DNA from: Botryllus schlosseri
Taxonomy: Eukaryota
Reading direction: 5' to 3'
NCBI GenBank assembly: GCA_051294905.1
Contig: CM119383.1
Coordinates: 7,440,001-7,504,000, forward strand
Length of the DNA stretch: 64,000 nt
The notes below the pieces were generated by a model that was not told the DNA's origin, made no database searches, and saw nothing but the letters and a program-made list of their open reading frames with translations. This document shows positions 5,428 to 63,590 of this stretch, one piece after another. Both the position numbers and the translations under genes were made by a program. Numbering within the stretch: the first letter of the stretch is position 1; the number at the start of each line of letters is the position of its first letter.

Positions 5428-6729
5428 ATGGCGAAGCTTCCAGGCTCCTGTGGCTATCCTTTTGTAAGTGACACGTCCATTGAATTCTACCGCAATCCGG
5501 AGGAATACATTTCGAAAAGGCTGCAGGAATCTTCTTCGAATATATTTCAGAGTCGCTTGCTGAACTACAAAACTGTTTTTGTATGCTCGTATGATGCTAC
5601 TCGTGAAATTTTAGAAGAGAAAGGGAGAGATTTTAAGCATGGATATCGTTCGTTCTTGTTCAATTCGTACGGAGACAATATACTGTTTGAAGACGGTGAA
5701 TCGGCGTCACACTTGCGGGGATGCATGCTTCCTATCTTTAATGACTTTGCCCGATATGAAAGCACTATGGAAAAACTTTGCAAGCAGTTTTTCTCGTCCA
5801 TGACTCCTGGAGACGGTGACAACGTAGTGATAAGCAATGTGTATGAAACATTCAAGACTCTGATGACAAAGCTTTGCCTACAGCTATTTTTGGGTTTTGA
5901 TGACGATAACTCAACAGAGTCGACTGAATCCATATCGGAATTGGCAACTTTACACTGGCATGGTATTATATCGGTACCTGTCAGTTTGAAGGTTCCGTTT
6001 GCTGGGGAAAGTGGTTGGAGTAAGGCTGTGGCGGCCAAGGATAAATTACTTGACATCATCAGGGACAAAATCATCATTGGGAAGACCAAAAGCACTGAAG
6101 CATGCAATAAATCCGTATTTTCCTCACTGCTAAATTTACCTTTCAAGAATGATCGCAAAGACATCGAACAGCACGTTTTGTTGTTTATTTCGGCTCTGAT
6201 TCCCAAAGCATTTTCCTCCATCATCACCTCCTTTATTATTGAAATGTCAGGAGAGGAGAGAGAGGATATGCGAGAAAAAGCAAGGACGGACGACTCGTTT
6301 CTTGAGAGAGTATTGCTGGAAGTGCAAAGACTCCGACCCCCCTTTTTCGGTGGTAGACGCATAGCAATTCGAGACACAAATATCGGCGGTTACCATGTAC
6401 CGAAGGGACATGCTGTTGTGTATGTGTCACATTTCGCTCATAGAGACGAAAAGGTTTTCAAAAATCCTGAGAAGTTTGACCCGGATCGTTGGCTCAACTG
6501 GGACGGGCCGCTGCTCGCTGCCGATAAAACCTTCACATTCGGTCGTGGTGAGAGACGATGTATCGGCCATAAATTGATTCATGACATACTATGGTATATA
6601 ACGAAAGAACTTCTGAAAAACTATGACTGGTCCAGTGTATCAACTCGCTCCGAAACACCATATAAATTGCTACCAGTCTCACGACCTGTCGAGGTGGTCT
6701 CTATGACATTTGAAAGGCACGGCGCATGA
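5428..6729 (+). CDS. Cytochrome P450, CYP16/CYP26-like, single coding exon, 433 aa
   Basis: ExxR (EVQR), PERF-like PEKFDPDRW, haem motif FGRGERRCIG. N-terminal LPGSCGYPF with no hydrophobic anchor. I-helix LLFISALIPKAFSS. Confidence 0.9.
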   Translation: MAKLPGSCGYPFVSDTSIEFYRNPEEYISKRLQESSSNIFQSRLLNYKTVFVCSYDATREILEEKGRDFKHGYRSFLFNSYGDNILFEDGESASHLRGCMLPIFNDFARYESTMEKLCKQFFSSMTPGDGDNVVISNVYETFKTLMTKLCLQLFLGFDDDNSTESTESISELATLHWHGIISVPVSLKVPFAGESGWSKAVAAKDKLLDIIRDKIIIGKTKSTEACNKSVFSSLLNLPFKNDRKDIEQHVLLFISALIPKAFSSIITSFIIEMSGEEREDMREKARTDDSFLERVLLEVQRLRPPFFGGRRIAIRDTNIGGYHVPKGHAVVYVSHFAHRDEKVFKNPEKFDPDRWLNWDGPLLAADKTFTFGRGERRCIGHKLIHDILWYITKELLKNYDWSSVSTRSETPYKLLPVSRPVEVVSMTFERHGA

Positions 6730-25140: not shown

Positions 25141-25935
25141 TCATTGATGTTTTGAGGACGTGGCAGGATGCGAGCTGGAGAATGCATTACAATGCGGACA
25201 GAATTCAAATGAAACCCCGCCATTTTTTATATTCAGGCAAATACCATAGTCATTTTCTTTTCGCCTTGCTTTTGCTGCGGCTTCTTCGGAATCTGGGTTT
25301 CTTTTCCGTTTAGCACCAGACGAAGACGGGTTAACACACTTTATAGTTGGATCAACTGATATACCAGGAATTGACGTTACCGCTTCGAGTATTTTTGCCA
25401 GTTCACTCTGGTTTTGTAATACACCTTTCAAGTATTCAGCATCTTTAGATAATGATTCCACTGCTTTTTGCAAAGAGTCTATTTTTGATTTATATTCGAC
25501 GTTCTCTTCTCTCAGTTTTGTTACAGAGCTCTCCAAACCTTGAACATATTTCTTTTTTTTAATCCTGTTTTGCCTTGCCACGGCAGCACCTTTGGTCTCG
25601 ACATACTTGTATCGTTTTGTACTCCGAAAATAATGATCTCCGCCTTCACGAACGTTTTTCGCGGATTCAGCGGTCGCTTTACATGCGAGATTAGTCAACA
25701 ACATGGCCCCGGGATCGGAATCGATATCACAAATCAAATTCGGAGACATCAAATATTCCAGTCCATCTTCCGGGGATGCAGCGTCACTCAGAAGACTGTC
25801 AAATAGTTGAACTTCTCCATGTTCGCTCCCATCATACGACGATGTGGTTGCAGGCGACAACTCACCATCGTCAATTGTAGTCATTTCTGGAAAATCGACG
25901 TTGGATAGAAGGCTGAAATCGTCGAAGATATCCAT
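25141..25935 (-). CDS. CREBZF: CREBZF/Zhangfei-like bZIP transcription factor, single exon, 264 aa
   Basis: Atypical basic region TKGAAVARQNRIKKKKYVQGLES, leucine zipper, YLKGVLQN.SEL, and C-terminal GICLNIKNGGVSFEFCPHC matching the CREBZF G.CL.V....VS.EFC..C motif. Confidence 0.8.
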   Translation of the reverse strand: MDIFDDFSLLSNVDFPEMTTIDDGELSPATTSSYDGSEHGEVQLFDSLLSDAASPEDGLEYLMSPNLICDIDSDPGAMLLTNLACKATAESAKNVREGGDHYFRSTKRYKYVETKGAAVARQNRIKKKKYVQGLESSVTKLREENVEYKSKIDSLQKAVESLSKDAEYLKGVLQNQSELAKILEAVTSIPGISVDPTIKCVNPSSSGAKRKRNPDSEEAAAKARRKENDYGICLNIKNGGVSFEFCPHCNAFSSSHPATSSKHQ

Positions 25936-28364: not shown

Positions 28365-29100
28365 TTTCACTCTTCCACTCTCACCTCGACTATGGAATCA
28401 TCTTTTGGGGGTTAACTTACGATACCTACTTGAATCAAATCGCAGTTCTCCAAAATAGGGCTATCCGTTTGATAAGTGGCATGGGCCGATACGAGCGTCT
28501 TTCTCCAAGATATAAATCCCTGGGGATATTGAAAGTGCGCGACCTCTGCACTTATGAAATTGCCAAGACCATGTACCGATATCACCATGGTGAATTCCCT
28601 TCTGCTCTTAGCCGCATCTTTACGCCATCTGCCGGTGTCCACTCTCACGGAACTAGATCCGCCACCGCTGGAAATATCTTTATAAAGAATTTAGCCGCTA
28701 GTGTGTGCCAGAGATCCCTAACTTTTGTTGGTCCAAGGATTTGGAACTCCTTATCAATAGAGCACAGAGGTTTGTCATTTGCATCATTCTGTCGGAATTT
28801 TAAGTCTCAGCTCATTTCTACATATTGAGACCTGAGAGTATAATCTGGTATTTATTTTGAACTAGTGTTACAGTTTTTTTTTTTTACTACCACTGTTTTG
28901 CGTTTGCGTTTTGTTGTTTAATCTTTTGTTGAAGTGTTACTGACCGACAGTTGCATGATATAAATGTTCTAACGTTACGCCTTGACTACAGCTGACTTGA
29001 AGACTACACATCTTGATGTGGTCATATCGCTGTGTTTGTCTTTTTTACATATTTGTGTGAACAATCATCGTACGAATAAAGAATCTGTCTGTCTGTCTGT
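28365..29100 (+). mobile_element. 5'-truncated L2/Crack/CR1-group LINE (ORF2 C-terminus, 3' UTR, (CTGT)n tail)
   Basis: HSHLDYGIIFWG...LQNRAIRLISG...LGILKV.DL...GPRIWNSL...FKSQL; aataaagaat(ctgt)n tail. Confidence 0.8.
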
Positions 29101-29904
29101 AATCGGCGTGATCAGATATAAATGTTCGCTTGACGTTGCGCGTGCCGTTGCCACCGATTCCACTCTGGGTTCTGCTTCTGCGTCTGTATGGAATCGTGCT
29201 CACACTATGTTTTATTTTTTTCATTCAATTACTAAAATTACTTCAACTTGGAGAATCATGGCTGCTCACCACGTCACCAGTTATATCAGGCAAAACGTAC
29301 CGAGATTCCAGTAAGGGCTTCTGCGGTATACTCGTGATGCCTGCATCAACCGTTGCCTCAATGTCGTTGTTTTTGGTATATTTTTTTCATAAATAAGTTG
29401 TGGCGGCTCCAACACAATGTCATATCGATCGCCGATCGGTTGACCAATTATGAAAAGACCAAATTATTTTCATTTTGCAGCATTACTATTTCTTATTCTT
29501 TAGTTCTATGCAATTTCATTTTAAACAAAAATCGACCAAACATCAATTCGTAAGAGGGGGGAGATGTGTCTGTTTAGTCGACTTGGTATAAAGTAGCTTA
29601 TTTTTTCACAATATTTGTTAATGCGACAAAGGTTAAGATAAGTTGAAAAGCGGTGCAATAAAAGAAAGTATGTTCACTTGGTTTCGACTTGAAGTTGATA
29701 TGGAAAAAATGAAATAAAAATTGTATATCATTCAAAAAAATTATTTTCCATTTGGGGCTAACCCATTCTACCTAATTGACCATCTACTGTTGTTCTATTA
29801 AAGATGTGCGTGCTGTACTTGGTAATTCATTTCTTCTTTCAGAATTATTACAATTATCTACCAAGGATATAACTGCAAGTACTATAACACATATTGAGGC
29901 AGTG

Positions 29905-32900
29905 ATGGCTGCAACAATCCATGATGAAGATCATGGCTTCCTAGATATGAATTTTGATGACCAGAACCTTAGTAACTGCTTTCTTGATCCATCGGATTTA
30001 CCACGAGATATGGACTTCTCATCGTTCGACAAGTCTTGGATGAACGGAATCAACCTTGAAGAGATATTGGAGACTATAAAAGACCCCAAGGAGGGCGCCG
30101 TAATCAAGTCGCCTGTTTCAGAAACTGTTGGCAATCAAACTCTGAATGACTTGCTAAATGCCCCTCCCACTCGTCCTTACGCTGCAACAGCGGCCTGTGA
30201 TACATCATTCACCGACCCCACATTAGCGGCAAGATCGCCTCCGCAAATTGTACCGACTGGTCAAAAAATTATCCAACCAGCGTCACCTCCAGAAATCAAA
30301 CCTGACGTTGCACAGTACTCCACGGTTCCCATCATGGTAATGCCTAGTAATGATTCGATTACTGTTGATAAACAACCGATCCTATTGAACTTACCACACC
30401 CATTCATTGTGCAGCCGACAACCACCAACACCATTCAATTGCAAAACAATACTCCCGTGCAGATGGTATCCGCTACCCAAACTGCAGTGCTGCAGAACAC
30501 AACTGTTACAAATTTTGTGGGTAATGGGAATAATCCAACTAGAACTCCGGAAACCGATCTCATTGGTCTTCTCCAACAAAACCCTCAATTCGGTACCAAA
30601 GTGACCAACGCCGCTAACTCAAAACCGCTTTCACAGCACACTGTCCCTATGACGTTGGATGACGGTATGAGTTTGGGAGCGATACCTCCTGCCGCGCTTG
30701 AAGACAAACACAACATGCAACTAAAAGACGAACCACCGAAAAGATCGTCCCATAACGCGATCGAAAAAAGATACCGTTGCTCCATCAATGATAAAATAGC
30801 GGAGCTTCGTGATATGCTCATGACAAAGGACGCAAAATCTAACAAAGCAGCCGTCTTGAAAAAGGCGATAGACTATATCAAGTTCCTTACTAATGCTAAT
30901 AAGCGACTGAGGACGGAAAATGCATTTTTAAGAAAGCATTTGAATCCTGACAACAAAGTCACAGTTCGTGATCTCATTGAAAACAGCCCGCAAGCTCCCA
31001 TTGATATGAATTCCGATGCGGGTTCACCGGAAAGTTTCTTCGGTCCTATTGGCGGCTTTCCGACACCGCCACATTCTGATCCGGATTCAACCGTGGCTGA
31101 TAGCCCTCAGTCGATGGATGAATGTATGACTGCTGCCGAAGTTGAAGCAGTAAACTCTAAAAGGCGGCTGACCAGTTCTGCATCTATCGGTTTATTCATG
31201 GTCTCGATGCTGATACTGAACCCTATTGGTGTAATGTTCAACTACTTGAGTCCGAGTTTTGTGGGCGTGGATTCTGACGCGGTGAACATAGGCAGAAAGA
31301 CTCTCGGACAGGAACAGTCTTACCTTGAACAATCGTGGGGCTGGAACCTGGCATGGTTTTTGAATATTATTGTCACCCTGGGGATTTTCTTCAAATTTTT
31401 CGTCTGGCATCGTCCTGTGTCGGAATCTCTTGGAAAATCATCCAAATACTGGCAGTTCCGAAAACAAGCAGACAGTGATATTGCCAAGCGCAACTGGTCT
31501 GCGGCCACCCAGCAACTTCATCAATGCCTTGTTCAGCTCGATAAACCTCACGACGTGTCCAAGTTTCACACTTTCAAAGCGTTCTTACTGGCTTCGGTAT
31601 ATGTGTTGTTAGGCCGCTTGAGAATTGTCAGACGCCTGTCTCACCGTAGATCAATGCAAGCAGCGTCGGTCAAGATGAGATCTTCGTGGGATGTTGCAGG
31701 AATATACCACAAGTTGAATGAACTAAGGTTGGCTGGTCGTGCTACAGACGAGCAGTGTCCTCTGTTCTTTGCATTGTCTGCTGTGAATTACGCGGAATCC
31801 GCCGGGGCTACGGGGCGAGGTATGGTTGAAATTTACCTTGGTGCGGCGTTGAGATGCAAGCGTTCCACGAACCAAGTGGCCAAGTTCTTCTCGAAGCTGC
31901 TGTTCGCGAAAGTGCGGTACTTGGTGAAGAATGATAAGATTGGTAAACTTTCTACTTTGAAATGGATTTGCCACGCCGAAACTCGTGCTTTCATCCACGA
32001 AGAAAAGGCTCTTTCACAAAAAGATTTTCGTGGAGACACCGAACTGTTTCCGAACGATGACCACGTTGACGTCGTTGAACTTTTTGGAAAATGCCTCGCT
32101 AGAAGAATGCTTGCAAAGGCTTTGCATTCCTTGGTACTCCCTGACGTTGAAAACGCGTCGAAGAAATCTGATATACCTGGAGCTGTGGATTTATGCGGCG
32201 CTGCTCTTCATTATATCGAGCTTGCGAGGGATTGCTCCGTTGTGGGAGGAAAGTCGGACGCAGTGTGGAATTGGTGGTGTAATATGATTTCTGTCGCTGT
32301 ACATTGGCAGTGTGGAAGTGACGATTTGGCCAATCAGTTGGTGCGGGATATTGAAGACATTCCGAAGCATCTTCAAGCCAGTAACAATCCCATATGTCTG
32401 TCACTGTTTGCAGCGTTTTCCGCTCGGCAGGACTGCACCAAGCTAGATTATAACGAGAAACAGAAATTCACGGTGGAGACTAAAATTAATGGAAAGTGTG
32501 AAATTGCCGAGAAGTTTTTGAACGAGAGTCTGATTTGCTCGAAGTCAAATGCCCAGCTCGAAAACGCACTTCACCTTATTACTTGCGACTGGCTTTTGTC
32601 ATGTCGAGTGATGGTTTGGCAGCATGTCTATTGCTCTGACAATGTGACGGCACGAGCGCCGATAAGCCTTCTCTCGGGATTTAATCGTGACCTTTGCTCC
32701 TTGAGACGCATCGCTCGGAAAATGGCCGCCGTCATGCCGCTGGTGTACTTGAATGAGGCGATCGAGCGACTCATGGCCAGCGCTTGTCCGATGAGAACGC
32801 AGCAGCTGCTGAGTCGAACGTTGAGGAAGCGTCACCCTTCCGACAAATCGAACAGCGAGTCGAGGGAGGGGGCCGCGGCGCTGATGATGGCCAGCAGACA

Positions 32901-33060
32901 CTTGCCGTATCCTTTGCTGTCGGTGCCGGGGCAAAAGGCCGATCTGGTGTCGAAGGCTATGAGTACTTTAGAGAAGATAGGCGATCAACGGGGTATGAAA
33001 GATTGTCGTCGAATGCTTTTGAGACTGGGCTCGTCGAGTCCCGCGTCTGTTACGACTTGA
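29905..33060 (+). CDS. SREBF: Sterol regulatory element-binding protein precursor, single coding exon (~1051 aa from ATG 29905)
   Basis: bHLH-Zip with the diagnostic Tyr ([16 protein letters not shown]); TM1 with NP helix break (LILNPIG); luminal S1P site RKTL; TM2; long C-terminal regulatory domain. Confidence 0.95.
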
Positions 33061-43249: not shown

Positions 43250-44050
43250 CGGCCTGTTCTACAGCCTTGGGCGCTTCATGCCAGCATGGGTTCTTCTGAT
43301 ACTCTTTAAATCCTCAATCCAATCGAAGTTACATTATGGCATCCTCTGTTGGGGGGCTGCCAGTAAAACTGCACTCAAGCCACTGCAGAAACTACAGCAT
43401 AAAGTGCTCCGAATCATAGCTAGGGCCCCAAAGGGGCCTGGCTGCCCATCCAATAAGTCGCTGCTGAAGAGATTCGGCGTCCTAAACATAGAAGATATGC
43501 GGAAACTAGAAATCGCCAAGTTTCTGTATCAGTTTCACTGCGGTCGTTGCCCCGAATATTTCAATGACTTCTTTACCTCTGAATCAAAAGCGCACAGGTA
43601 CAACACACGCGCGTCCACGTCGTCCAAATATCATATGATCGACCGAAAAGATCATCGCTCTATCAAATATGCCGGACCTGATGTGTGGAACAGTATCCCG
43701 CCGGCCATCCGACAGTCGACGAGCATGTCCACATTCAAGTCGAAATACAAGCAATTACTACTAAATAAATACAGTCCATCCTCAAGATTACCGGACCACG
43801 ACTGACCTATCGATCTCGCTTCCCATGACATGCCGCCCTATTTCTTGTCGCTTTCTTTCTCTATACTATATTCTTTACTTTCACTCAGTGTACATGCCTC
43901 CTCTTTACATCGCCTAGGCCAAGGTGGGTGTCAGATTCCATAGACTACTCCTTGTCGCTTCGACATCTTCCTGTCTTTTCATTGTATCGCATTTTTTTGT
44001 GGTGTATTGAACTGATAAAATTGCTAATAAACCAATGATGATGATGATTG
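43250..44050 (+). mobile_element. 5'-truncated L2/Crack-like LINE with (ATG)n tail
   Basis: IQSKLHYGILCWG...LQKLQHKVLRII...GPDVWNSIP...FKSKYKQLLL. 3' UTR motifs recur at ~38100-38170, 42180-42320 and 56940-57330. Confidence 0.8.
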
Positions 44051-47349: not shown

Positions 47350-50364
<3,015 letters not shown>

Positions 50365-51828
50365 ATGAATCTGAGTGTTACGTGTACGCTTCGAATTTAT
50401 TTGGAAATGTAATTGTAAATATCCGCAAACCACATCAACGCATTGGGTACAAGATGGTAGTTGTTCTAGTTTGGAACTTTTTCACTGGATTAGCATGTAC
50501 AAATTCACCACCATCCATAATTTATCAGATGTATATTGAAGTTATAAAGCACGCATGGTCAGTGGTCACTATATATCTTCACACTGTGTGTAATGTAGAC
50601 TTGATTATTCGCTATCACATACCGTTCATCATTTGATAGGTTCAAAATAATAAGCGATCAGATATGCAGCTTAACACGCATTTCACTTGTCACACGCTCT
50701 TTCTAAAATGATAAATATTGTTAAGTCCTCAATATATACACACTTGAAAGTTATGAATGGATACTGGAGCCCTAAATACTACTATATAATATTTAAACTT
50801 CGATGCAACTTTTGAGTAAGGTGTGGTGGAAGTTTTTAAAATTCATATAAGTGTATGTATATCCAAACCTTGTCTCGCCGTGCATGATTAACTTTGTTCA
50901 ATTGAATTGACCATGACTTTGCTGAATACATATCGAATCATTGCAACATCGAGTCGCCCACGTTTTTCAGTGTATGTTGACTTGCAAATAGTCTACGATA
51001 TTGTGAAGGTAAAATAAGTATACATTCAAGTAATGACGCAATCAACTACTAGTAGAAACAGCGATTTCAAAGACATTACTAAGAAGTATAGTAGAAAACG
51101 AAAGTACTGAAGACTCGACGTACAAGTAATTAAAAGGGGGAGGAAAAGTAGCTTAGAACGAGGCCTTCGTTAGTCAACCACAGATAATGGATTTCAACAT
51201 TGTAAGAGGAATGTTTCACCTCAGAATGACCAATGGTGCCGAATATATAACACCACTTTTTACTGGACAAAATGTCCGTAGTTTATTGGCTTCAAAATTG
51301 TTGAAGCAGAAACGGACGCAGTGCAAAATATAGTCATTTGTGTAAGTAGTGCAAGTAAGCAGAACCTCCCGGAGTACTCCGAAAAATCGGGTTTGTCGCT
51401 GACCAACTCTGCCTTATTCCAACGCCATATGCCGTGAATGTCTATACTTGGTGCTTCGGAGGCCACAAGATCAGCAAGTATCGAAATAGAGGTCACATCT
51501 GCTCTCTCCAATTTCGTTGGTATGGTTGGTGCACGTATAGGAGTAAGTATATGGCGACCTGTTTCGATAATGCCCAACGTAAGATAAATATTCACACCTA
51601 CGACTGTTCGTATAGTTATTTTTACCCATTTCGCGCTGGTCACGAATGCTCATCATAACCCAAACTACTCTCACACTTCTACCCACAAATAAGAACATAA
51701 TTTTATCATCGTCTTGGAACACCGACTGATGAATTTTAAATACACACAACTACAAGGTAAGATTTTATTAGCAACGACATAATAAAACGAAAAACACCGT
51801 CTCCATTTTGTGCACCGTAGCTGGTGCT

Positions 51829-54800
51829 TCATCGTGGTCTTATCAAATACCTTCCCTTTAAAAGTTGATGTGAGCTGATTTTTACTAAAGTACTGTTGCT
51901 CTGTCGAACTGTGATGTCGTTCAAGCCAATTGAAGTTATTGTCGCGCTGAAAAGAACAGGTGCGATATAATTATATGCATGCGAAACAAATCAACGCTTA
52001 AGGGGGTAAGGTGGCGTAATATAATAAGGCGCGGTATAATCCGCGGCTGCAACACCAATGGGTCCGGGTTCGAGTCCAACCGAGGTCGACTTCCGAATTC
52101 CGATACCTAAGTGTTGGAGGTTCACCTAGGCTCCTCCTCGGCACCTCCTCCGCGTCAGCGGCGTCTTACAAAAGCCTAGAGGTGGGCCGTGCTGTAAGTC
52201 GGCAGTTACAGATAATAATAAGAATATCGGCCTGGTGTAAATGACCAAAATAGTCGACAAACACCATGAATACCCCAAAAACAAACAAACCTAAGGGGGT
52301 ATTTTATGCGTGTCAATAGTTTCATCACTGCTACACAGTTAATTAAGAAAATGGCTTTGTATACATAAACTCTCGAGAACTATTGATAATACTCAACCTG
52401 GGAATGATTCATCCATGTTGTACTATTTGTCCTTGAGTGTGCAATGTGCATATCTTTTAACAAATTCTTTCATTCAGTCACCGGTACTGTATTCGTAGGC
52501 CAAGGTAGCAGTTTGATTGGTTGGATTTCACCAAGTCGTTTTGATACCTCCCATTCTTTTCATTGTGTGGCAATTGATAAAATAATACTGATTCTGACAC
52601 CATGTGGCGGAAATAATTGGACGTGGCCAGGAAAGTAGTACTTCTTTGGAGTACTTAAATAGGTTTTTCCAACTTTCGTTACTTACTCAAGTTGTTATGT
52701 CATATTCCACTCCACTTCCACTTGAGCAGTATTGGCAGCTAAACTGCTCCCTTTTAAATTTTTTAATTGTGCCAAGTAGAATGTATTGTTTGGGTGGACT
52801 TTTATGGGTACAATTGACCTAAAACTGGGCGAGGTGACCCTTCTGGACTTTACCAGAATAATTGCACCAATTGCACATGTCACAAATTATTCTGTGCTAG
52901 TCACCAAGATACGACAACTGACCTCAGCAATTGTTTAAAAAAAGAAAGTCAGCAAAGTCCTGTTCCAATTAATCCACTTCTTCAAACTATCTACTGGAGT
53001 ATATGGAGACACACTCCACTTACTGTGTATTGCACATATCTTTTCCTTTCATTGTAACGGTTTGTCCTCTGCGGTATATTCTTCCATTGTATGTCAATTT
53101 GTGGTCGCGGATGCTGCAAGTGTGCTTCAATTTGGAGACGTAGTCTACAGGGTAAGAGTTAATCCCAACCGAAATCACGGGAGAAAAGAAGTACCACACC
53201 TGAGTCTCCAAACTTTTTTCGTTTGGTCGCGGTCAAGGCTCTCTTGATCACAGTCCAGTCGTCCACTATATCGTCCTCTTTCAACTTGTAGACTATATAT
53301 GGACGTGAGGTGGAGTCAAGGGTAATGTCATCTTTAATCACACACACAAAAAAGACAAGGCCTAATGAAGATTTGCTAGAATTTAAGATTTTCTTGACTG
53401 TGCATTAAAATGTAAAAACTTGTATGTAGTAATATAATAAAGTTGTTTCTTTTGATTGTAAAAGGATATCTGACACTGTCACCGGCTTTCTCTTCCTCTT
53501 ATTTCCATTTCCATTAACGTATCCAAAGCTGAACTGGCAATCTTTTTTGAATTTCAGGCCATGACCCTTCCGTCTGGACTTGCAAATTGGTCCCCCGTGC
53601 ATTGAGCGCGACTTTTGCGCATTTCCGAGCTCCGTGTCAGTCCACAATTCAGTTGAAAAGTCAACATTATCTCGATCTTCCTCCAGAATCCTGATTCTCT
53701 CCAGTATATCCGCTCGAATATCGTCAGCCATCATGCTCTTCTCGTTCTGAAACATGTATCTGAAGAATTCGAATGCACCCTGTCAAAAGTCTGTCTCACC
53801 TCAAAATGTTGAGTGTTGGCTTGAATTTGCGACTTGTAGATGCGTCCGATCGAGCTTTTTCTCAGCTCTCGAAGTCTCTCGCACACCTGATAAATTCATC
53901 AATTACCGAGTTAATTATTGTACCAACTTGTCATACATCGTTTGTCAAGTAATACAAAGCTATTGACAATTATTGTGATCAAATTTGAATGTTCAATATA
54001 AATATTTGGGGAGCGATAGACGGAGGCAAATTATAACTGACACTAAAGCAGGAAGGAGCCGAACTGTATATTATCATCTGCCCTGCTGGGAAGAGGAGTC
54101 GGAAGGGAGTCAGCATCACCATATTTTCCCGTTCATGCAATTCCGGAGTGCCAATTGGCTAGCCGGGAAGCAGTGGATACCAGTTCGAAAACATAACCGC
54201 CAATACATAAGGTGGACGCTATAACAGTACGCTGTCACGTCAGCAATAGCAGTAAAGGTATACCAAATTGCATGAGGTATCAGACAAAATGTGACTTTAA
54301 GCACGTATTTCAATTGGTCGTATTTCCGCCAACAAAATTCCAGTTGGCATCAATCCAACAAAATATGTTCGATTTTTTACCATCAAGTCATTCATGCTGA
54401 GACAATGAAATAATTGTTATATAGTGGTGGGAGTGATATTTGAAATTTGTTCAGTTGAGCACAGATGTAAAGTGAACAATTCCTTATAAAGAAGCATATC
54501 ATCCATCGTTATAATTTGAGAATCTCACGATTGCAGATTGTTTTTCAATGAACTATTATCCACACAAACCTCGATCCTGGATTTTTGACTCTGCTGCAAC
54601 GCATTGAATGGATCAAGATATTCAGAGCCAGCTTCAGACTTTACTTTTTTTAGCTGCCGTGTGATTTGGCTGTGACGCTCTTTGTAAAGCCTTCAAAACA
54701 TTGAAGTTTAAAAAACATAATATGCGTCAATCGCTCTCAAAATAATATACCGATCTCTGATGTTCGTGAATTGTCTTTCGATAGTTGACATTTCGTCCAA

Positions 54801-55566
54801 GCATTGCGAGCGTATTCTGCTACTGTCTTCTTCGTCCAGTTCTGAACTTTCCGAATCCTCATCCTGCGTCAACCAGAATACACAGTAATGTAAATTAGTA
54901 TTACCAAAACAAAGGTGTGTATAGAAATGTGGACAATGACATGCCACCATCAATCTGTTGGTCACAGCATCATAAATGTGACGACTAGAAATATTATATA
55001 AGCTAATTACAGTCTGCAGTTTTCTTACAACAAAAGTAAAATAATGTAGGCCTACAGATATGCATATTTTCGTCTGCGCCATTGATGTGCTTCGACAATG
55101 GATATGGAAAGGAACTGGAAGGTCACCGAGTCCCCATTTTTCTGTACCGGGCTATCGTGGAGTGCCAGCGGAGATGAGCAGCAAAGAAGCTGGGAACAGC
55201 AGCTTTACAAACAAGTCTTTGGTCGGACCTGAGGGGGCTCGAACCAACTAACTAACAATGGAGAAGCTAGATACTTTACCATTGTGTTATCTATAGTATT
55301 AGAAATTTCGTATGACAGAGGTGATTGGAATCTAGGTTGCACTAAAAGACCCAGAACTGGACACTGTTTAGGTTAAGAAGAAACACATAAACAGCATATT
55401 ATTAGCCAAGTTTGAATGAATGTCATATGGACTATCACATATATGGAATATCACATAGACTGGACCACCAGACACTTGATTTTACTATCTTGATTCTAAC
55501 TAAACTACAATCTCAGTCACACTTCTCATCTTCATGCAGCAATACCAGCATAAACAAACACCCATA

Positions 55567-55605
<39 letters not shown>

Positions 55606-56639
55606 TTTATTCATCATCGCAGAATAAAGTGGGTGTTAACTAATTTGAATTTGATAAAGAGTTCCTATAATCATATTCAAGACACCCCATAGCATGCGGG
55701 CATACTACAAATCTTACTTCCTTGCTCGCTTACATGCAATAATTGAATACTAGTAGGTCTATCCCATAAACGTCAAAGATTTCAATATAACTACAACACA
55801 GCTTACTTCTTCATTATTCGAAGATGGTGATGATGAAGATGAAGGCGAATAAACCGCAGTTCTGCGGACTACTCTAGAGCTGCTTCTGGTGATTGTTTGC
55901 AGCTTTTTTGCTTGCCTATCTTGCCGATTTTTTTCCGAATTCGCAACAGACGACAAGATGGATAGCATATCAGAGTCCGCATTATAAAGTTCTCCAGATA
56001 AATTCTGAGTAATATCTGCAAAACGATCTTCACCGTGGGAGCTGGTTTGCGGAGCCATTCCAGATGAAGGACTGCAATTGATTAAGCATATCCCAGCAGA
56101 TTTCAGCCCTTTCATAGATGATGGCAAATGACGTTTTGGTAGAGCACCAAGCCTCAAATCTTTCCTTCTGTTCTTTGTGACGATGTCATCTTCGTCAAAA
56201 TGCACATCGCAAATGCTTGCACTGAAAAATATTTGCATGAAATCAGTTTAAAAAAGCAGGGATGTTACCTTAATTCAGAAAAAAAAACTATCCACAACTT
56301 CTTTACTGTAATTCGAACTACTGAATCTATACATACAAAGTAAATGTCTCAACGATTTCAAACGAAATTGGTTTCAGTGATCTTCAATTTCATATTGTGT
56401 AAACGTACAACTCAATTCTGATGTTACCTTTCTTTATGAAGTTGGTGCATGATACTGTCATAATGGTGTTTTTCATCTTGCAACGACAAAATAAAACTCC
56501 GCAACGACTCCCTATGCGTTTTCTCTTGGTCGCTCTTCGCAAATTCAGGTCGCATTATCCTAAAGAAAGACCGGTTGGTACAGGACTTTTTGGCCTTGGA
56601 AAAAGTCCAGGAGCACCCCGGAATGCAGCAGTTACTCAT
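51829..56639 (-). CDS. THAP zinc finger-BRMS1L fusion, 9 coding exons, ~522 aa, intact frame
   Basis: Exons 56639-56428, 56221-55807, 54863-54751, 54690-54570, 53886-53800, 53746-53470, 53304-53200, 53144-53024, 51946-51829; phases consistent and no internal stop. N-terminus CCIPGC...FFRI.RP...ICDVHF...LRLGALPKRHLP (THAP), then BRMS1/Sds3 coiled coils, VTVSGPYIVY.L.EDDI.DDW, and the BRMS1L C-terminal domain. Confidence 0.8.
52011..52270 (+). mobile_element. tRNA-derived SINE in the last intron of the fusion gene
   Basis: B box gggttcgagtcc; body shared with 19795-20050. Confidence 0.7.
53305..53469 (-). other. U12-type AT-AC intron (165 bp)
   Basis: 5' ATATCCTTT, branch-like CCCTTGAC, 3' AC; splicing restores VTVS-G-PYIVY. 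Confidence 0.9.
55571..55602. repeat. (GA)n microsatellite, probably a minus-strand retroelement tail
   Basis: Minus strand reads gatgaataaaaatt(ct)n. Confidence 0.7.
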
Positions 56640-56939
56640 GTTCTATAGAACTATCCCTGTTCATAATGGAATATGCGATCAAATATTGCATGACAGACTC
56701 GCGATTAGCGAGACGAGAGACATATCGCGCCACATCCGAAAGTGGCCGCAGTCCCGCATAGTATAATGCTGCGAGCTGCGAATGAAGATTCGATCGCAAT
56801 ATCAACACATTAAGTCAAGCGTGAGCAACGTCATTCTCGCTACTGTCCACTAGAAATGCGCGAGACCTGGATTTTTCAATAACTTCAAGTTCAAGCAATG
56901 ATATATTTATATCATTGGTTCAAGTTTATTCATAAAATA

Positions 56940-57330
56940 TTATCATTTCAAAACATCACAAGACTGCGATACAATGAAATATAGGAAGGTGCCAAAACGA
57001 CTAGAAGTAGTCTTTGAGATCAGACACCCACCTGGTCCTATAGGCAATGTAAATAGGAGGCATGCACATATACACTGAATGAATGTAAAAGAAGATAATA
57101 TAAAATGATAAGCGACAAAATCAGGTGGCTTGTGACGGAAGGCGAGATCGATATGTCAGGTCGTGATCCGGTAAATGTTGAGGGCTGACTAGTATTCATT
57201 CAGAAGAAATTACTTGTATTTCGACTTGAATGTGAACTGGACATGCTCGTCGACTGTCGGATAGTCGATGAGATACTGTTCCTCACTCCAGGTCTGGCCA
57301 ATGATATATAGCCGAAAGTATTCGGGTTCA
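56940..57330 (-). mobile_element. LINE 3' fragment between the two BRMS1L paralogs
   Basis: Homologous to 43670-44000 (ccgacagtcgacgagcatgtcc...cacattcaagtcgaaatacaag). Confidence 0.7.
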
Positions 57331-58350
57331 TCTCAATATGAATATACTATCCGATTGCATAGTGAAGCCGGGGCCTAAGATATTCAGTAATAAGTATCGT
57401 AGGCCCCGGTTTAGCTCTGTATCTCCATGAAGCTCTTCAAATATATCATTGGGCGCACCATAGCAATTTACAGCGTAGCTACGATGTTAATGGCTATGGG
57501 TGCACACTGCACATCCCAGGTTTTCGGAAAATCAATTGGATACAAGCGCGATATTTTTCAAGTACTTGATCCCATGATTCGAAATTTCAAATTTATGCAC
57601 GTTTACGACGTTTTTCAAGTAAACAATCTTAGCACCTGCACTGTATTTTGCACCCTTGACCTTTTTATTACAGTTTAAATTTTTTAGAGTAATGTAAGGC
57701 TCTTCAACCTCTGGACCACCAGTTGTTTGAGCATGGAAATTTACAGCTCATCTGATGTATCCTAAAATTACTTTCAACTTTTCAAAATCAAAATAAGTGT
57801 AAAAAGTAAGTTGTTTTGATGTTTAAATAGCAGTAGAAGTAGTATGCAGTGAAGACATAGCCAGTTCAGTAATTTGTGGGAGTAGGAAAACCAGGGATAT
57901 ATATCCCTGAGGAAAAACTACCTGACTACGTCGAAAAAGTAGTAGTACTTCGTTCTGACTGTCTCTGCTTCACGTTGCTGGGTCCCTAAGACAGTCTGCT
58001 TTCATTTTAAGACCATGATTTGAGTTGTTGCGTATAGAAATATCTCGCGTCAATTTGTATAGGCCGAAAACCAGCTAGTTTAGATTAGGTGGCGAAAGTC
58101 TTCTTGAAGATGCAGTTAACCTGAAAACTAGAACTGAACCGGAACATGCGCAATTTATCCAATTTCTACACCGTACCAATACTTTCTAGAAGTACCCTGT
58201 TTCTATCACTGAGCTATTATTTTCTCGATTTTCGTCTGTTATTTTATGTCACATTTTGGTTATTGAGTGAAGAATAAACATTACTAATAAGTGGTGGCGC
58301 AGGTATAAACGTATTTTTCTTTTCAAGCTCGCATCTAATTCACCTTGAAA

Positions 58351-61300
58351 ATGGAGTGTAGTGAAAAAATGGAGGAATCTCCGAAAGAACAGGACGCCGC
58401 GGGGTTAAACTCTAGCGGGTCTTCATCTGGAATAGTTCCACAAACCGGCAACCACGGCGAAGTTAGCATGGAAGATCGCTTTGCAAATATTGCTCATAAT
58501 CTATCTGGAGAGCTTTACAATGCGGAAAATGATATGTTATCGCTTTTATCGTCTGTTGCTAACTCCGAACAAAAGCGCCAAGATAGGCAAGCTAAAAAGC
58601 TACAGGAAATGAACAGCAACAGCAATAGGTCCCGGGTTGTTCGTGGAAGTACTGTTTCTTCGCCTTCATCTTCATCATCGTCATCATCAAGTAACGAGGA
58701 GGTGAGTGTCTTCTACATGAATGTTGCTTATATCCATATTATGTTGCTGTTGAAAAGTAGGAGATTACCATTTATTGCTAATCGTGTGTGGAAGACATCG
58801 TATAGTTTATAGGGTTCGGCGTTCGGCCCATGTGATGATGACAGCCTACATATTGTAAGGAAGTTTGAGTGCAACCATTAGCCTGACTATTGTGACTGTT
58901 AATTTATAATGTTGAGGACAATTCTGCAACCTGTATAATTATTATACATTATGGAACTGGTGTAGGTAGGCCTACTTCTGTCCTGTGCATGAGAAATGTA
59001 TCTGCCGACTGCACGCACTCACTGGTCACAAGCATTGTCAGTTCTGTCATAGAAAACATCTTGCTAAAATTTTCATGATAGTAAACTTGCTACATGATCA
59101 GTCTGCACCTTGTTGCAATTGGATTAAATGCTGAATAGCGGAAACTGCAAAGACTAAATCACAATAGTGAAAAATTGTGATTCTTAAAGCGCCGAAACAG
59201 CAGAAAATGTGGATATTTATAGCAGATCAACTCTTAAATTCGTAAACAGTAGAATGTCTTGTACTTATATCACCGGAATGATCTTGTAATGAAAACAACA
59301 GAATATTTACATGAAATGAAAATATGAATTAGCACAAAGTGGAGCATGGATGAAGACGTGTGATTTCGATCAGTCATTTTCAGCCTAATCAGTGTTGAAC
59401 TTGCATGACTTACTTTTCCGTGTTTCGCTAAAGTGTATTTTTGTTTAACGCTCATCCTCGGCTAATTTCATATCAAGGCCGCTGTTTCACCAAAATATTG
59501 CTAAATAATTTCCGCCTTATTCCCACAAGTTTTCATTCCCGTGTTTCAGAGTTGCTCTGCGCTATGCTGTAAAGATCAACCGCTATTTCATTGTTTTAGG
59601 AATCAAACTTTTTACTGTTTTCGCGCTCATTTTCCATATTTCTGATTTCGCAATTCCTGGAAAAATTGTCTGTAATTAGCCTATTCAACACTAGCCTACT
59701 GCGACGAACAGGTTCAGACCAATTGTGGTGTGATGTTTGTTGCTATCATGTTCAATCCTGTTGTGTATTGTACTGAATGCAGGACGAAGATTCTGACGCG
59801 GAAAGTTCAGAACTAGACGAAGAAGACTGCAACAGAATAAGATCACAATGCTTGGATGAAATGTCAACCATCGAAAAACAATTTACAGACATCAGAGATC
59901 AGTAAGCTTTATTGAAGGTCCATCGCCTTTTATGCTTCGATTAATTTGAAAATTCGTTTCTCTGAAGGCTTTACAAAGAGCGACACAGTCAGATCACATG
60001 CAAGCTAAAAGAAGTCGAGTCTGAAAGTGCTTCAGAATACCTAAATCCATTCAATGTGTTGAAGCAGGGCAAAGAAACCAGGATAGAGGTTGGTCTTGAT
60101 CATAATTCGTTCAAATATATAGTTATGTGTGAACCTTATAAGTAATCTCTGATTGGGAAAATCTTGAAATTGTAATTAAAGCTGGGAAAATCCAGTACCA
60201 GTATACGAGTGAATCTATTCCAAGTCAAGTGTCATATATTATTATGTCACAACAGTAACTATAACTTAAGTGGTTTGAATATATGCCGTTTTTGTCCACA
60301 TTAAAATTAATGCCGGCTATTGCCTATTAGTTGCTAATAATGCCATGACGACTTTTTCAATCCATGCGGCATTACTTGAACTGAATAGTACATGATAGTT
60401 ATAGCGTTGGGCATGCATACAACCTGCCTGTTTGTCAATGGACTATGACGTATAAGGTTGTGTGCTACATAAGCCCCAGTTCAGCCCCAATTTGGTACAA
60501 TGTTCACTTTCCATCAAATTGAGACATTACCATTTACGGCGAATCATGGACATCGAGTCGAGGAAATTAGTGACCGATTGGTCACTTTTCGATGTGTCGG
60601 GTAGATTCGGAATGCTTTGCGAAGGAAAATCATTTTGATTACTTGAAAATATTACCCCAGGTAACGAGTGATTCCATATTTCTCATACAGCGAATCAAGT
60701 CAAAGTGGTGTCCTAGAGATTAATACAGCAATCAATGAATTTATCAGGTGTGCGAGAGACTGCGAGAGCTGAGAAAAAACTCGATCAGATGCATGTACCA
60801 GTCGCAAACGCAAGCCAACACTCAACATTTTGAGGTGAGACCAACTTGACCGAGCGTATTCGAATTCTTTCAATATTTCACATTCGCTGCAGAATGAGAA
60901 GAGCATAATGGCAGACGGTATCCGAGCGGAGATACTGGAAAGAATCAAAATTCTGGAGGAGGACCGTGACAACGTGGACTTCTCGACTGAACTCTGGACC
61001 GACACGGCGTTGGCGAACGCACAAAAGTCACGCTCAATGCACGGAGGACCAGTTGCCAAGTCGGGACTGAAGGGTCATGGAAAGAAATCGAAAAAAGAAC
61101 GTCAGTTCAACTTTGGCTTCACAAATGGCAATGGGAACAAGAGGAAGAGAAAGCCGGTGACAGTGTCGGATATCCTTTTACAATCCAAACACGCAACTTA
61201 CTATCTATGCTACATATTTTATTACTCAATTGTGATCCAACAAGAGTTGGTCAGTAACAACATAGGCTTACTTCTACTTTACCGGAGTACTAAAGTAGGT

Positions 61301-62204
61301 TTTCCCACTTCTACTTCAACAGTTTCTCTCACTTTTATGAGTTAAATTGTCATAAGAATTGCACGAGATACTCCGTGTTACTAGAACTTAATATATTTTC
61401 GAAGATTCTACCTATATGTTGTGCCAATTACTTGTTTTGCATTAGGCGTGAAGATATATCTTACAATTTAGAAAGTAGCTGCCACCGATTAACTGCTAAC
61501 AATACGCCGCCCCTCGACCAAATGTACCTTTGAAACTACCGCATCTGAATTCAACCCTGACTTCGTAACATTAATGATGACATCATCCTTAACTCCGCTG
61601 TACGCCCGTATATAGTCTACATGTTGAGAGAGGACGACATAGTCGACGATTGGACCGTGATCAAGAGAGCTTTGACGGCGAGCAAGCGAAGAAAATCTGG
61701 ACACCGAGGTACGGGGCTTCTATTTCTCCCATGATTTCAGTCGAGTTCAATCTCGCGCTCTCTATAGACCATTTCTCAAAATTGAAGCACACCTGCAGCA
61801 TCAACGACCACAAATTGACGTACAACGGAAGAGTCTTCCAAAGAGGACAAACCATCACGATGAAAGGGAAGGAGATGAGCAACACACAGTGAGTTAAGTG
61901 TTTTTCCACTTCTGCATGGAATAGGTTCATTTCAATATGAATATACAAACATACTATTCAATTGTATATTGAACAGAAGACGATTATTGTGCAAATAAGA
62001 TTTCATTTAAAGTACCATCACATATTAATTGCATGATAGCCTTCTTACTAATGGATACTTAATTCCAACACGCGTCTTCTTTCCAGCGCAACAATTACTT
62101 CAATTGGTTCCAACGACATCACAGTTCGGCAGAGCAACAGTACTCTAGTGAAAATAAGCACACACCAGCTTTTGAAGGGACGGTATTTGATACGACCACG
62201 GTGA
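58351..62204 (+). CDS. BRMS1L: BRMS1-like Sin3/HDAC subunit, 8 coding exons, ~432 aa
   Basis: Exons 58351-58701, 59783-59901, 59968-60088, 60748-60834, 60893-61169, 61604-61708, 61768-61888, 62087-62204. Motifs [70 protein letters not shown]. Confidence 0.92.
61170..61603 (+). other. U12-type AT-AC intron (434 bp)
   Basis: 5' ATATCCTTT, consensus branch TCCTTAAC at 61586-61593, 3' AC. Confidence 0.93.
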
Positions 62205-63590
62205 ACCTGACCGCTGCTTGCGAGCTTGGAATACCGTTTTCAATTTTGTGATATATTTTTTAATACAATCATATCTCTAACTTGTCCCAGTGGTTCTTTC
62301 GATTATCTTCAGTCTGTGTTCCAAGACCACCATAGTCGCTAGCCAGTTTTCATTGTGTGAGTATAGCAATGGAGCAGTATCAATCGACACTAGGAAGCTC
62401 AGTGATCACTTTACAGATCCTATCTAGCTTGCTGAACCCAGTGTTCAGGAAGCGATAAAATAGTGCGAAAAATTGCATAGCGGTGCAGCTTCATACTGTT
62501 CGACCGATGAATATTGACTTTGGATATTTCTTTTGAAGTTCAGGCCATTGCACGAAAATCTTGTCTGCCCAGCGATATAACAAACGTCCAGACAATGACA
62601 TGGTCTTTACTCTGCATATACTCTCCACAAATACTATCTGGGCTTTTCCTAGTCCGAAGTACTAAAATGGAAATGGAAGTTCAGAGTCTCAGACGAGTGT
62701 GACTTAACAGAATTCACCCAAACCTTGAATAGAAGTCCTACAAGACACAGAGGAATGCATGTACCAGGTCCAGTGCACAGAATTAGATCTGGCGATGTGT
62801 TCCATATGATAGGAAATGCGTGGATGATTGCTATCAGTGTGGTGTAGGCACTGCTCAGCCATGGTTGAGCAACTTCTCTGCTTCTGAAATTAGTATTGAC
62901 CAGTTAAAAACTCTTCGCAGATTGAGAAAAACAGGAAGGTACCATACCTAGGAATAGTATTAATATAGAAATCTTTTCCTTCAACATTTTTGCGCTCGTC
63001 TTCATGCTGCATGATCTTCGTTCTGCTCATTGTATCACTGCTAGCAAAGACATAGTGTACAGGAGTATACTGCTTCGAAAGGGATTTCAGAAGTCGCAGA
63101 AGCTCAGTTGTATGGCCGCCTGAAAATATAGTAATTACTCAGTTCAGTTTATTACTATGATTTCATCATTTCAAAACACCACAAGACTGCAATACAATGA
63201 AGAGATCGGAAGGTATCGAAGCAATCATATTTACCGACCTGACCCAGCTATTGCAAGTACAGATACCCGAATGGAAGGAGTTGGTTTCTTTCCAATACGC
63301 GTTGCGATCCAAATTAGCCGACAAATTGCGATGGCGAATATCGCTATGACAGTTCCTACGCACGTCATATCCAAAATTTGGAAGAAGGAACCGTTCGTTC
63401 TCTTAATAGTTTATTTCTTGGCGCGCCTTCACGTATTTAACACTACTTCAGCCTGCCTGATGCTGAAATTTGCTATCTTCTTTTCATAAGGATTGAGCTG
63501 TCAGCCATTTCCATCAGTATGCAATGAAGCGTAAAGACATCAACAACTCAACGAAACCCGTTGATGCGTAGCATGCAGCCCGGTGATCAG

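Follow-up and report, generated by a model that had tools for sequence, protein, structure and literature searches.

The 64,000-nucleotide (nt) stretch of the Botryllus schlosseri genome analysed here (contig CM119383.1, positions 7,440,001 to 7,504,000; hereafter the window, with positions counted from its first letter) carries two copies of BRMS1L, which encodes an Sds3-family subunit of Sin3/histone deacetylase (HDAC) complexes. The plus-strand copy is the parental gene. The minus-strand copy, which lies head-to-head with it and runs from 56639 to 51829, begins with a THAP-like zinc-finger sequence in place of its own start. This chimeric gene is real, expressed and selected.

Gene model and transcript of the chimeric gene

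The exon model was built from blastn and tblastx comparisons of the minus-strand region with the plus-strand paralogue, and the junctions were read base by base. It comprises nine exons on the minus strand (56639..51829) with a total of 1,569 nt, that is 522 codons with no stop, in agreement with the product of about 522 amino acids (aa) proposed in an earlier note on this DNA. The two minus-strand open reading frames (ORFs) from which that note had started are present at 56424-56639 and 55759-56238. The phase 2 GT-AG intron by which it joined them, 56427..56222, is borne out by the sequence and by an RNA joint in X1 and X3, two of the sequenced RNA data sets described below. The parts of the locus are as follows.

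56690..56900, no strand assigned: CpG-enriched putative promoter region upstream of exon 1
56640..56707, minus strand: 5' untranslated region (UTR) of at least 68 nt; the X1 contig extends to 56707
56691..56632, minus strand: upstream ORF (uORF) in the 5' leader, 19 codons with two ATGs, out of frame over the main ATG
56428..56639, minus strand: exon 1, coding part, codons 1-70 plus 2 nt; ORF, model and unbroken RNA-contig cover
56222..56427, minus strand: intron 1, GT..AG, phase 2, splitting the THAP-like domain; RNA joint 56221/56428
55807..56221, minus strand: exon 2, the fusion exon, with the THAP C-terminal half, then a short new linker, then the homologue of parental exon 1 (start near 56069)
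54863..54751, minus strand: exon 3, model and X3 contig joints
54690..54570, minus strand: exon 4, model and X3 contig joints
53886..53800, minus strand: exon 5, model and X3 contig joints
53746..53470, minus strand: exon 6, model and X3 contig joints
53305..53469, minus strand: U12-type AT-AC intron of the fused copy, from sequence; joint 53304/53470 in X1 and X3
53304..53200, minus strand: exon 7, model and X3 contig joints
53144..53024, minus strand: exon 8, model and X3 contig joints
51946..51829, minus strand: exon 9, model and X3 contig joints
51764..51769, minus strand: AATAAA polyadenylation signal about 60 nt beyond the stop codon; the X3 contig ends at 51772
61170..61603, plus strand: U12-type AT-AC intron of the parental copy, from sequence

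Exon 1 encodes the N-terminal half of the THAP-like domain, consisting of the Met, Cys5-x3-Cys9, FFRI and then a Trp-free helical stretch. Intron 1 is 206 nt long, with donor GTAACA, acceptor TTTTTCAG and phase 2 at both ends, and the splice across it reads ...HKE-S-ASICDVHF... into the C-terminal half in exon 2 (C75-x2-H78-F79 ... GALP99). Exons 3-9 (51829..54863) hold the full BRMS1L/Sds3 body, with the coiled coil, the GPYIVY...DDW Sin3-interaction stretch and the C-terminal domain. Seven of the eight introns are GT-AG and the remaining one, between exons 6 and 7, is of the U12 type with AT-AC ends. The earlier note had all downstream exons keeping their splice sites and frame; the frame is indeed intact and all joints are used, but one of the seven downstream introns (53469..53305) is AT-AC, not GT-AG.

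The marks by which a U12-type AT-AC intron was recognised were a donor reading /ATATCCTT, a YAC/ acceptor preceded at 10-15 nt by a branch site like TCCTTRAC, and RNA evidence that the intron is used. All of these are found in the fused copy, where the donor is G/ATATCCTTT, the branch site CCCTTGAC and the acceptor CAC/, and the RNA joint has ends reading GT..AT on the plus strand (X1, X3). The parental intron has donor G/ATATCCTTT, branch site TCCTTAAC and acceptor GTAC/, with YAC/ in both copies. The intron immediately precedes the GPYIVY codons and has been kept by both paralogues.

Four RNA runs were compared over 51600-57500, the junction contigs being Logan contigs of X1 and X3, which come from two studies. 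A 1,560-nt contig from X3 spans 56573 to 51772, its pieces falling on eight of the nine exons, with joints into and out of exon 5 completing the chain, and its joints coincide with the predicted junctions, including that of the AT-AC intron. A 556-nt contig from X1 joins 55946-56221 to 56428-56707, which demonstrates that exon 1 is spliced to exon 2 and that 68 nt or more of transcript precede the ATG. Of the two joints singled out for RNA support in the earlier note, 56428/56221 is crossed by contigs of X1 and X3, and 55807/54863 by a contig of X3. An assembly or chimeric-contig artefact was considered and rejected: each RNA-contig piece differs from the minus copy at 0-3 positions whereas the exons of the paralogues are only 79-91% identical, so the contigs are not chimeras of the two copies. 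That the spliced chimeric transcript is real is close to certain. Words of exon 1 are present in runs of at least eight studies, and under two further organism labels. Two X15 reads span the junction of parental exons 1 and 2, so the parental transcript is present too.

The uORF in the 5' leader ends 5 nt past the start of the main ATG, and in-frame Met codons follow downstream at M107 and M126. The CpG-rich stretch placed upstream by the earlier note is there: the observed/expected ratio for CpG at 56600-56899 is 1.3-1.6 (1.33-1.60), against 1.02 for the whole 64-kb window, a value that means no overall CpG depletion. A 40-nt palindrome (56887-56926) lies just upstream of this stretch. At the other end of the gene, the 3' UTR has no homology to the parental 3' UTR. 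Intron 8 measures 1,077 nt, compared with 198 nt in the parent, and part of the difference is explained by insertion of a short interspersed repeat at 51994-52387, with word depths of thousands to tens of thousands in X1 and hundreds in X3. This repeat has loose ends (...GGCGAGATAGCGCAGT) resembling the head of a tRNA-derived short interspersed element; ARAGORN found no tRNA in the window.

Origin, selection and neighbouring genes

The direction of the duplication can be read from the genes around the parental copy.

58351..62204, plus strand: parental BRMS1L, 8 exons, 432 aa, head-to-head with the fusion gene
62494..63368, minus strand: Alg14 homologue, tail-to-tail with parental BRMS1L; tblastn with the L001 Alg14 query

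The nearest named relative of both copies is Styela clava BRMS1L-A, with further matches in Ciona, Phallusia and Clavelina. Parental BRMS1L is 67% identical to the Styela protein and 79% identical to P0002, an unfused BRMS1L encoded by L001 and L002, which are transcript contigs of a more distant ascidian. In these contigs BRMS1L again stands tail-to-tail with Alg14, the two 3' ends being only about 200 nt apart. The Alg14 homologue in the window gave four exon-sized tblastn matches (summed E 6e-67). Because the plus copy has kept this ancestral neighbour, it is the parent of the minus copy, an inverted duplicate truncated at its 5' end.

DNA homology between the paralogues runs from 56069 (equivalent to 58421, parent codon 24) to just beyond the stop codon, and parts of the introns are included. 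The homology that begins in exon 2 aligns to 58421-58715 of the parental copy; the earlier note had put the start of this homology near 56110, some way upstream of where the DNA alignment begins. Upstream of 56069, DNA comparison within the window found nothing like the parental promoter or first exon. The native BRMS1L start has been replaced, as that note had claimed: in its place the duplicate has a 5' end of the THAP type. Since the join to THAP-type sequence falls inside exon 2, the fusion took place at the DNA level, and in frame.

A duplication predating the split from the P0002 species was considered and rejected. Both copies carry derived indels and residues that neither P0002 nor Styela has, and in the three-taxon geometry of nonsynonymous divergence (dN) the fused copy attaches 0.012 from the parent; together these place the duplication after that split. 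The interval between the two BRMS1L copies (56919-57500) contains several abundant repeats with sharp read boundaries at 56942, 56979, 57131, 57310 and 57350, and a 73-nt piece at 56918-56990 recurs inverted at 63142-63214.

The comparison with the parent copy called for in the earlier note gives a pairwise ratio of nonsynonymous to synonymous divergence (dN/dS) of 0.14-0.20. With the L001 coding sequence as outgroup, branch dN is 0.095 for the fused and 0.012 for the parental copy, and of the amino-acid changes 53 are polarised to the fused copy, 3 to the parent and 20 are ambiguous; the fused protein has evolved about eight times faster than its parent. When the paralogue dS of 0.75 is halved evenly, a split made because dS to the outgroup is saturated, omega (the per-branch dN/dS) is about 0.25 for the fused copy versus 0.03 for the parent. 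Exons are 79-91% identical to those of the parent and short introns 68-79%. The RNA contigs show six exonic differences from the genome, one in exon 1, and every one is synonymous. Shuffling left the first 123 codons open in 5 of 20,000 trials. By these measures the fused gene is constrained yet fast-evolving, and we consider it probable that it is translated and that selection acts on the protein.

The body of the protein retains the features of the family. A family hidden Markov model (HMM) built from 120 BRMS1-family proteins, all with PF08598, matches the spliced protein over its full length at residues 161-521 with 367 bits (E 7e-114), compared with 411 bits for the parent; P0002, the nearest unfused relative, matches PF08598 itself at 72 bits. 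At columns conserved in at least 90% of the family the fused copy keeps 44 of 57 residues and the parent 49 of 57, and five replacements at such positions are private to the fused copy (C223S, K259Q, E262K, A268G and M415K). The GPYIVY.L..DDI.DDWT.IKRA stretch is retained, with M415K within it. The residues of the coiled coil and of the Sin3-interaction stretch are conserved, and binding to Sin3 itself is predicted.

Elsewhere in the window, several long uninterrupted ORFs were noted, with assignments that rest on motifs: 47365-50364 (plus strand, 999 aa, SERCA-type Ca-ATPase-like), 29776-33060 (plus strand, 1,094 aa, SREBP-like bHLH-zip), 5428-6729 (plus strand, 433 aa, cytochrome P450-like) and 25141-25935 (minus strand, 264 aa, bZIP-like). 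Such very long ORFs suggest that many genes in the window are intron-poor, unlike the BRMS1L copies (nine exons in the fused one). Two further plus-strand ORFs, 28430-28828 and 43278-43805, share a similar C-terminal motif pattern (...YRYHHGEFP... and ...YQFHCGRCPEYF...) and look like the tails of ORF2 copies from retrotransposons of the type without long terminal repeats.

The THAP-like N-terminus

The THAP domain was defined by the signature Cys-x2-4-Cys-x35-50(53)-Cys-x2-His, four invariant residues (Pro, Trp, Phe and Pro) and a C-terminal AVPTIF box; the spacer range of 35-50(53) follows a published definition, and long THAP domains with N-terminal insertions are reported for some homologues (10.1101/2021.02.01.429122). 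In the joined product of exons 1 and 2 the motif reads C5-x3-C9-x65-C75-x2-H78-F79, followed after 18 residues by GALP99. All four zinc ligands are present (C5 or C4, C9, C75 and H78). Two of the four invariant residues, Phe79 and Pro99, are found, while the helix Trp is missing and the first Pro is displaced. The AVPTIF box is represented by GALPKRHL, with Ala97 lying 18 residues after His78, the His-to-Ala spacing reported for human THAP1 (10.1101/2021.02.01.429122), and its counterparts in two related ORFs are GALPKLHL (P0001) and GAVPKYHL (P0003).

Pfam scans covered the separate exon pieces, and the gathering score of the THAP family (PF05485) is 23.9 bits. The exon 2 piece matches only this family, at profile positions 52-85 (E 0.11, 13.7 bits), and the same family is matched at positions 50-87 by P0001 (E 0.015, 16.5 bits) and P0003 (E 0.0042, 18.3 bits). 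Of the 100 Atlas clusters nearest to exon 1, 92 are THAP, with a weak score of 0.69.

Queried with exon 2, a set of 1.84 billion representative proteins returned three matches: P0001, P0003 and the unfused P0002. P0001 is a genomic ORF of a relative that is 86% identical over all 138 residues of exon 2, which means that the same THAP/BRMS1L junction is present in that relative; the sample that contains P0001 also holds P0003, a further ORF with a THAP C-half. With exon 2 as query, the word-indexed search found P0001 only. Within the THAP C-half P0001 is identical at 31 of 34 residues, so that this half is conserved at least as well as the BRMS1L part of the same exon, and the similarity between P0001 and the window falls off exactly at the splice acceptor. 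Exon 2, P0001 and P0003 share ICDVHFD ... L.LGA.PK.HLP. No second THAP copy and no similar DNA was found within the window. We tentatively predict, with not quite an even chance, that the THAP-like part is a working DNA-binding module.

Interpretation and precedents

The reading we favour, with some confidence, is that the chimeric gene is young and specific to a stolidobranch ascidian lineage, and that its THAP-like finger would direct an Sds3-family subunit to DNA or chromatin. An inverted BRMS1L duplicate, extending from about codon 24 to just past the stop, would have landed head-to-head about 2 kb upstream of its parent and been joined in frame, at a point inside present-day exon 2, to the 5' portion of a zinc-finger gene of the THAP type, which would have contributed promoter, 5' UTR, start codon, exon 1 and intron 1. 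In the 522-aa product, a divergent THAP-like finger (about 105 aa) is followed by a short linker and then by the whole of an Sds3-family body. Because the coiled coil, the GPYIVY..DDW..IK stretch and the C-terminal domain are conserved, the body would still dimerise and dock on Sin3/HDAC; the appended finger would serve as the subunit's own DNA- or chromatin-targeting surface, and a Sin3/HDAC complex containing the fused subunit could reach particular sites unaided by a separate transcription factor. The roughly eightfold acceleration of protein evolution fits an altered function after fusion.

A number of observations weigh against this reading, most of them concerning the finger. The matches of the exon 2 piece, P0001 and P0003 to PF05485 all lie under the gathering score, and exon 1 alone has no Pfam match even at E up to 10. 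Sequence searches of the PDB with exon 1, the THAP C-half, a three-sequence profile and P0003 matched no THAP structure and gave chance-level hits only, and exon 1 has no word-sharing homologue of 39-122 aa among 5.8 billion proteins. The Cys-to-Cys spacer of 65 residues is outside the defined range; the sole Trp, W11, sits beside the Cys pair; and P31, the Pro nearest to the first invariant position, is two residues past where it is expected after FFRI. The THAP fold of the joined domain is putative. What the earlier note called a complete THAP fold is reduced to a C-terminal half with a sub-threshold Pfam match and an exon 1 with no HMM match, although its caveat that the conserved Trp appears replaced holds, there being none in the exon 1 helix region. 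It had proposed searches with the THAP and Sds3 profiles; the HMM built here for the BRMS1 family gave the full-length match reported above, and the THAP profile only the sub-threshold pieces. The uORF over the main ATG, together with the downstream in-frame Met codons, may reduce translation of the THAP frame. Expression is low in both raw-read runs, the omega estimate depends on the even split of paralogue dS, and the selection datum for exon 1 is a single synonymous variant. No cognate transposon element for the THAP part was found within the window, nor were transposon terminal repeats around it, the inverted repeats found there being short and at chance level; the earlier claim that a duplicated co-repressor captured a transposon domain stands as to the chimeric duplicate and not as to an identified transposon.

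The atypical exon 1 leaves room for a reading in which the duplicate captured only a promoter and start codon, and the THAP-like part has since decayed to a leader that does not bind DNA, leaving a divergent and perhaps tissue-restricted BRMS1L paralogue within Sin3/HDAC complexes. Having neither the parental promoter nor codons 1-23, the duplicate depended on a 5' end from elsewhere, exon 1 has neither an HMM match nor the Trp and has the over-long spacer, and fast evolution across the whole copy is compatible with relaxed constraint. Against such decay stand the four zinc ligands, all retained together with the Phe that follows the His and an ALP box spaced as in THAP1, a THAP C-half whose conservation in P0001 equals or exceeds that of the BRMS1L part of the same exon, and a 123-codon frame that shuffling so seldom leaves open. 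We regard this reading as unlikely, while taking it as the strongest competitor. Considerably less probable is that the THAP frame goes untranslated, initiation being moved by the uORF and leaky scanning to Met107 or Met126 to give a BRMS1L-like product of ordinary size, with exon 1 reduced to a leader that does not code. The 19-codon uORF with its two ATGs lies in the known 5' UTR and ends over the main start, and the in-frame Met codons sit just ahead of the parent-homologous region; but a long open frame upstream of them is unlikely by chance, the protein-level conservation of the THAP C-half in P0001 begins exactly at the splice acceptor, and the sole variant in exon 1 is synonymous.

A transcribed pseudogene, or a non-functional by-product of segmental duplication, might be suspected from the low expression in the raw-read runs and from the many more amino-acid changes in the fused copy than in the parent. 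We find this scarcely credible for a gene with no stop or frameshift in 522 codons and with eight splice-site pairs that are intact and used, the U12 intron included; omega and the uniformly synonymous variants point the same way, exons are more conserved than introns, and the fusion exon has been kept open in a related species (P0001). At the other extreme, the finger could derive from the genome's own P-like transposons and still recognise their ends, which would make the fusion a subunit dedicated to genome defence, one that directs Sin3/HDAC deacetylation at that very transposon family. We consider this improbable; it would be analogous to KRAB-transposase fusions but act via a core HDAC-complex subunit. 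If true, the gene would be a hard-wired, protein-based silencer of transposons made from a transposon's own DNA-binding domain.

The favoured reading, a chimeric gene with a THAP-like targeting finger, has precedents in concept as a case of domain capture by a co-repressor. In C. elegans, the CtBP co-repressor CTBP-1 carries a THAP domain at its N-terminus (Nicholas et al. 2008 J Mol Biol, cited in PMC8816384; features in 10.1101/2021.02.01.429122). There, as here, a THAP-type finger stands at the extreme N-terminus of a co-repressor that normally lacks a DNA-binding domain and is recruited by transcription factors, and the fusion is limited to one lineage. The host partner is CtBP in the one and an Sds3-family Sin3/HDAC subunit in the other, and the CTBP-1 THAP domain keeps its Trp and has a solved fold, whereas the N-terminal half of the putative finger in the fusion gene is atypical. 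KRABINER and SETMAR are host-transposase fusion genes (10.1101/2020.05.07.082677) in which a transposase-type DNA-binding domain is likewise spliced to a host chromatin or repression domain, an arrangement that could yield a new sequence-specific regulator. As expected of such a fusion, the two parts of the Botryllus gene share a single spliced transcript and its host part is constrained, with the omega of about 0.25 and six of six synonymous variants given above. KRABINER and SETMAR differ in being traced to a cognate transposon, whose exons were captured via splicing; for the fusion gene no cognate element was identified, and its join is intra-exonic and coupled to a partial gene duplication. 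The text of that study mentions none of THAP, Sin3 and HDAC, so no Sds3 or Sin3 subunit is named there as a host domain.

BRMS1, BRMS1L and SUDS3 (Sds3 family, PF08598) are core subunits of the Sin3L/Rpd3L HDAC complexes (PMC8800102, PMC6295471). The fused protein resembles them in full over residues 161-521, with an acidic Ser-rich stretch, the coiled coil, GPYIVY..DW..IK and the C-terminal domain, and differs in its private replacements, its rate and its finger: PF05485 is in none of the 120 best BRMS1-family proteins retrieved. Like human THAP1-11 and Drosophila P-element transposase, it carries the THAP-like part at its N-terminus, with C2CH ligands, a Phe following the His and an ALP box at +18; it departs from canonical THAP domains in the Trp, the first Pro, the spacer and the sub-threshold scores of its pieces. 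The earlier note knew of no such fusion from any organism, and our searches agree: the combination of THAP and Sds3 is absent from the 100 nearest named Atlas clusters, and no description of it was found in the literature search.

Sin3/HDAC complexes are usually described as lacking sequence-specific DNA binding and as needing transcription factors for targeting (PMC8800102, PMC6295471), and a core subunit with a built-in zinc finger would bypass that recruitment. As parent and daughter still lie head-to-head at one locus, with some intron sequence alignable, a tractable chordate relative offers the chance to reconstruct and test how the events followed one another, from truncated inverted duplication through in-frame exon fusion to accelerated evolution. 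Such a subunit would show, as an experiment of nature, how duplication and domain capture build new repressors, in parallel to THAP-CtBP in nematodes and to KRAB- or SET-transposase fusions in vertebrates.

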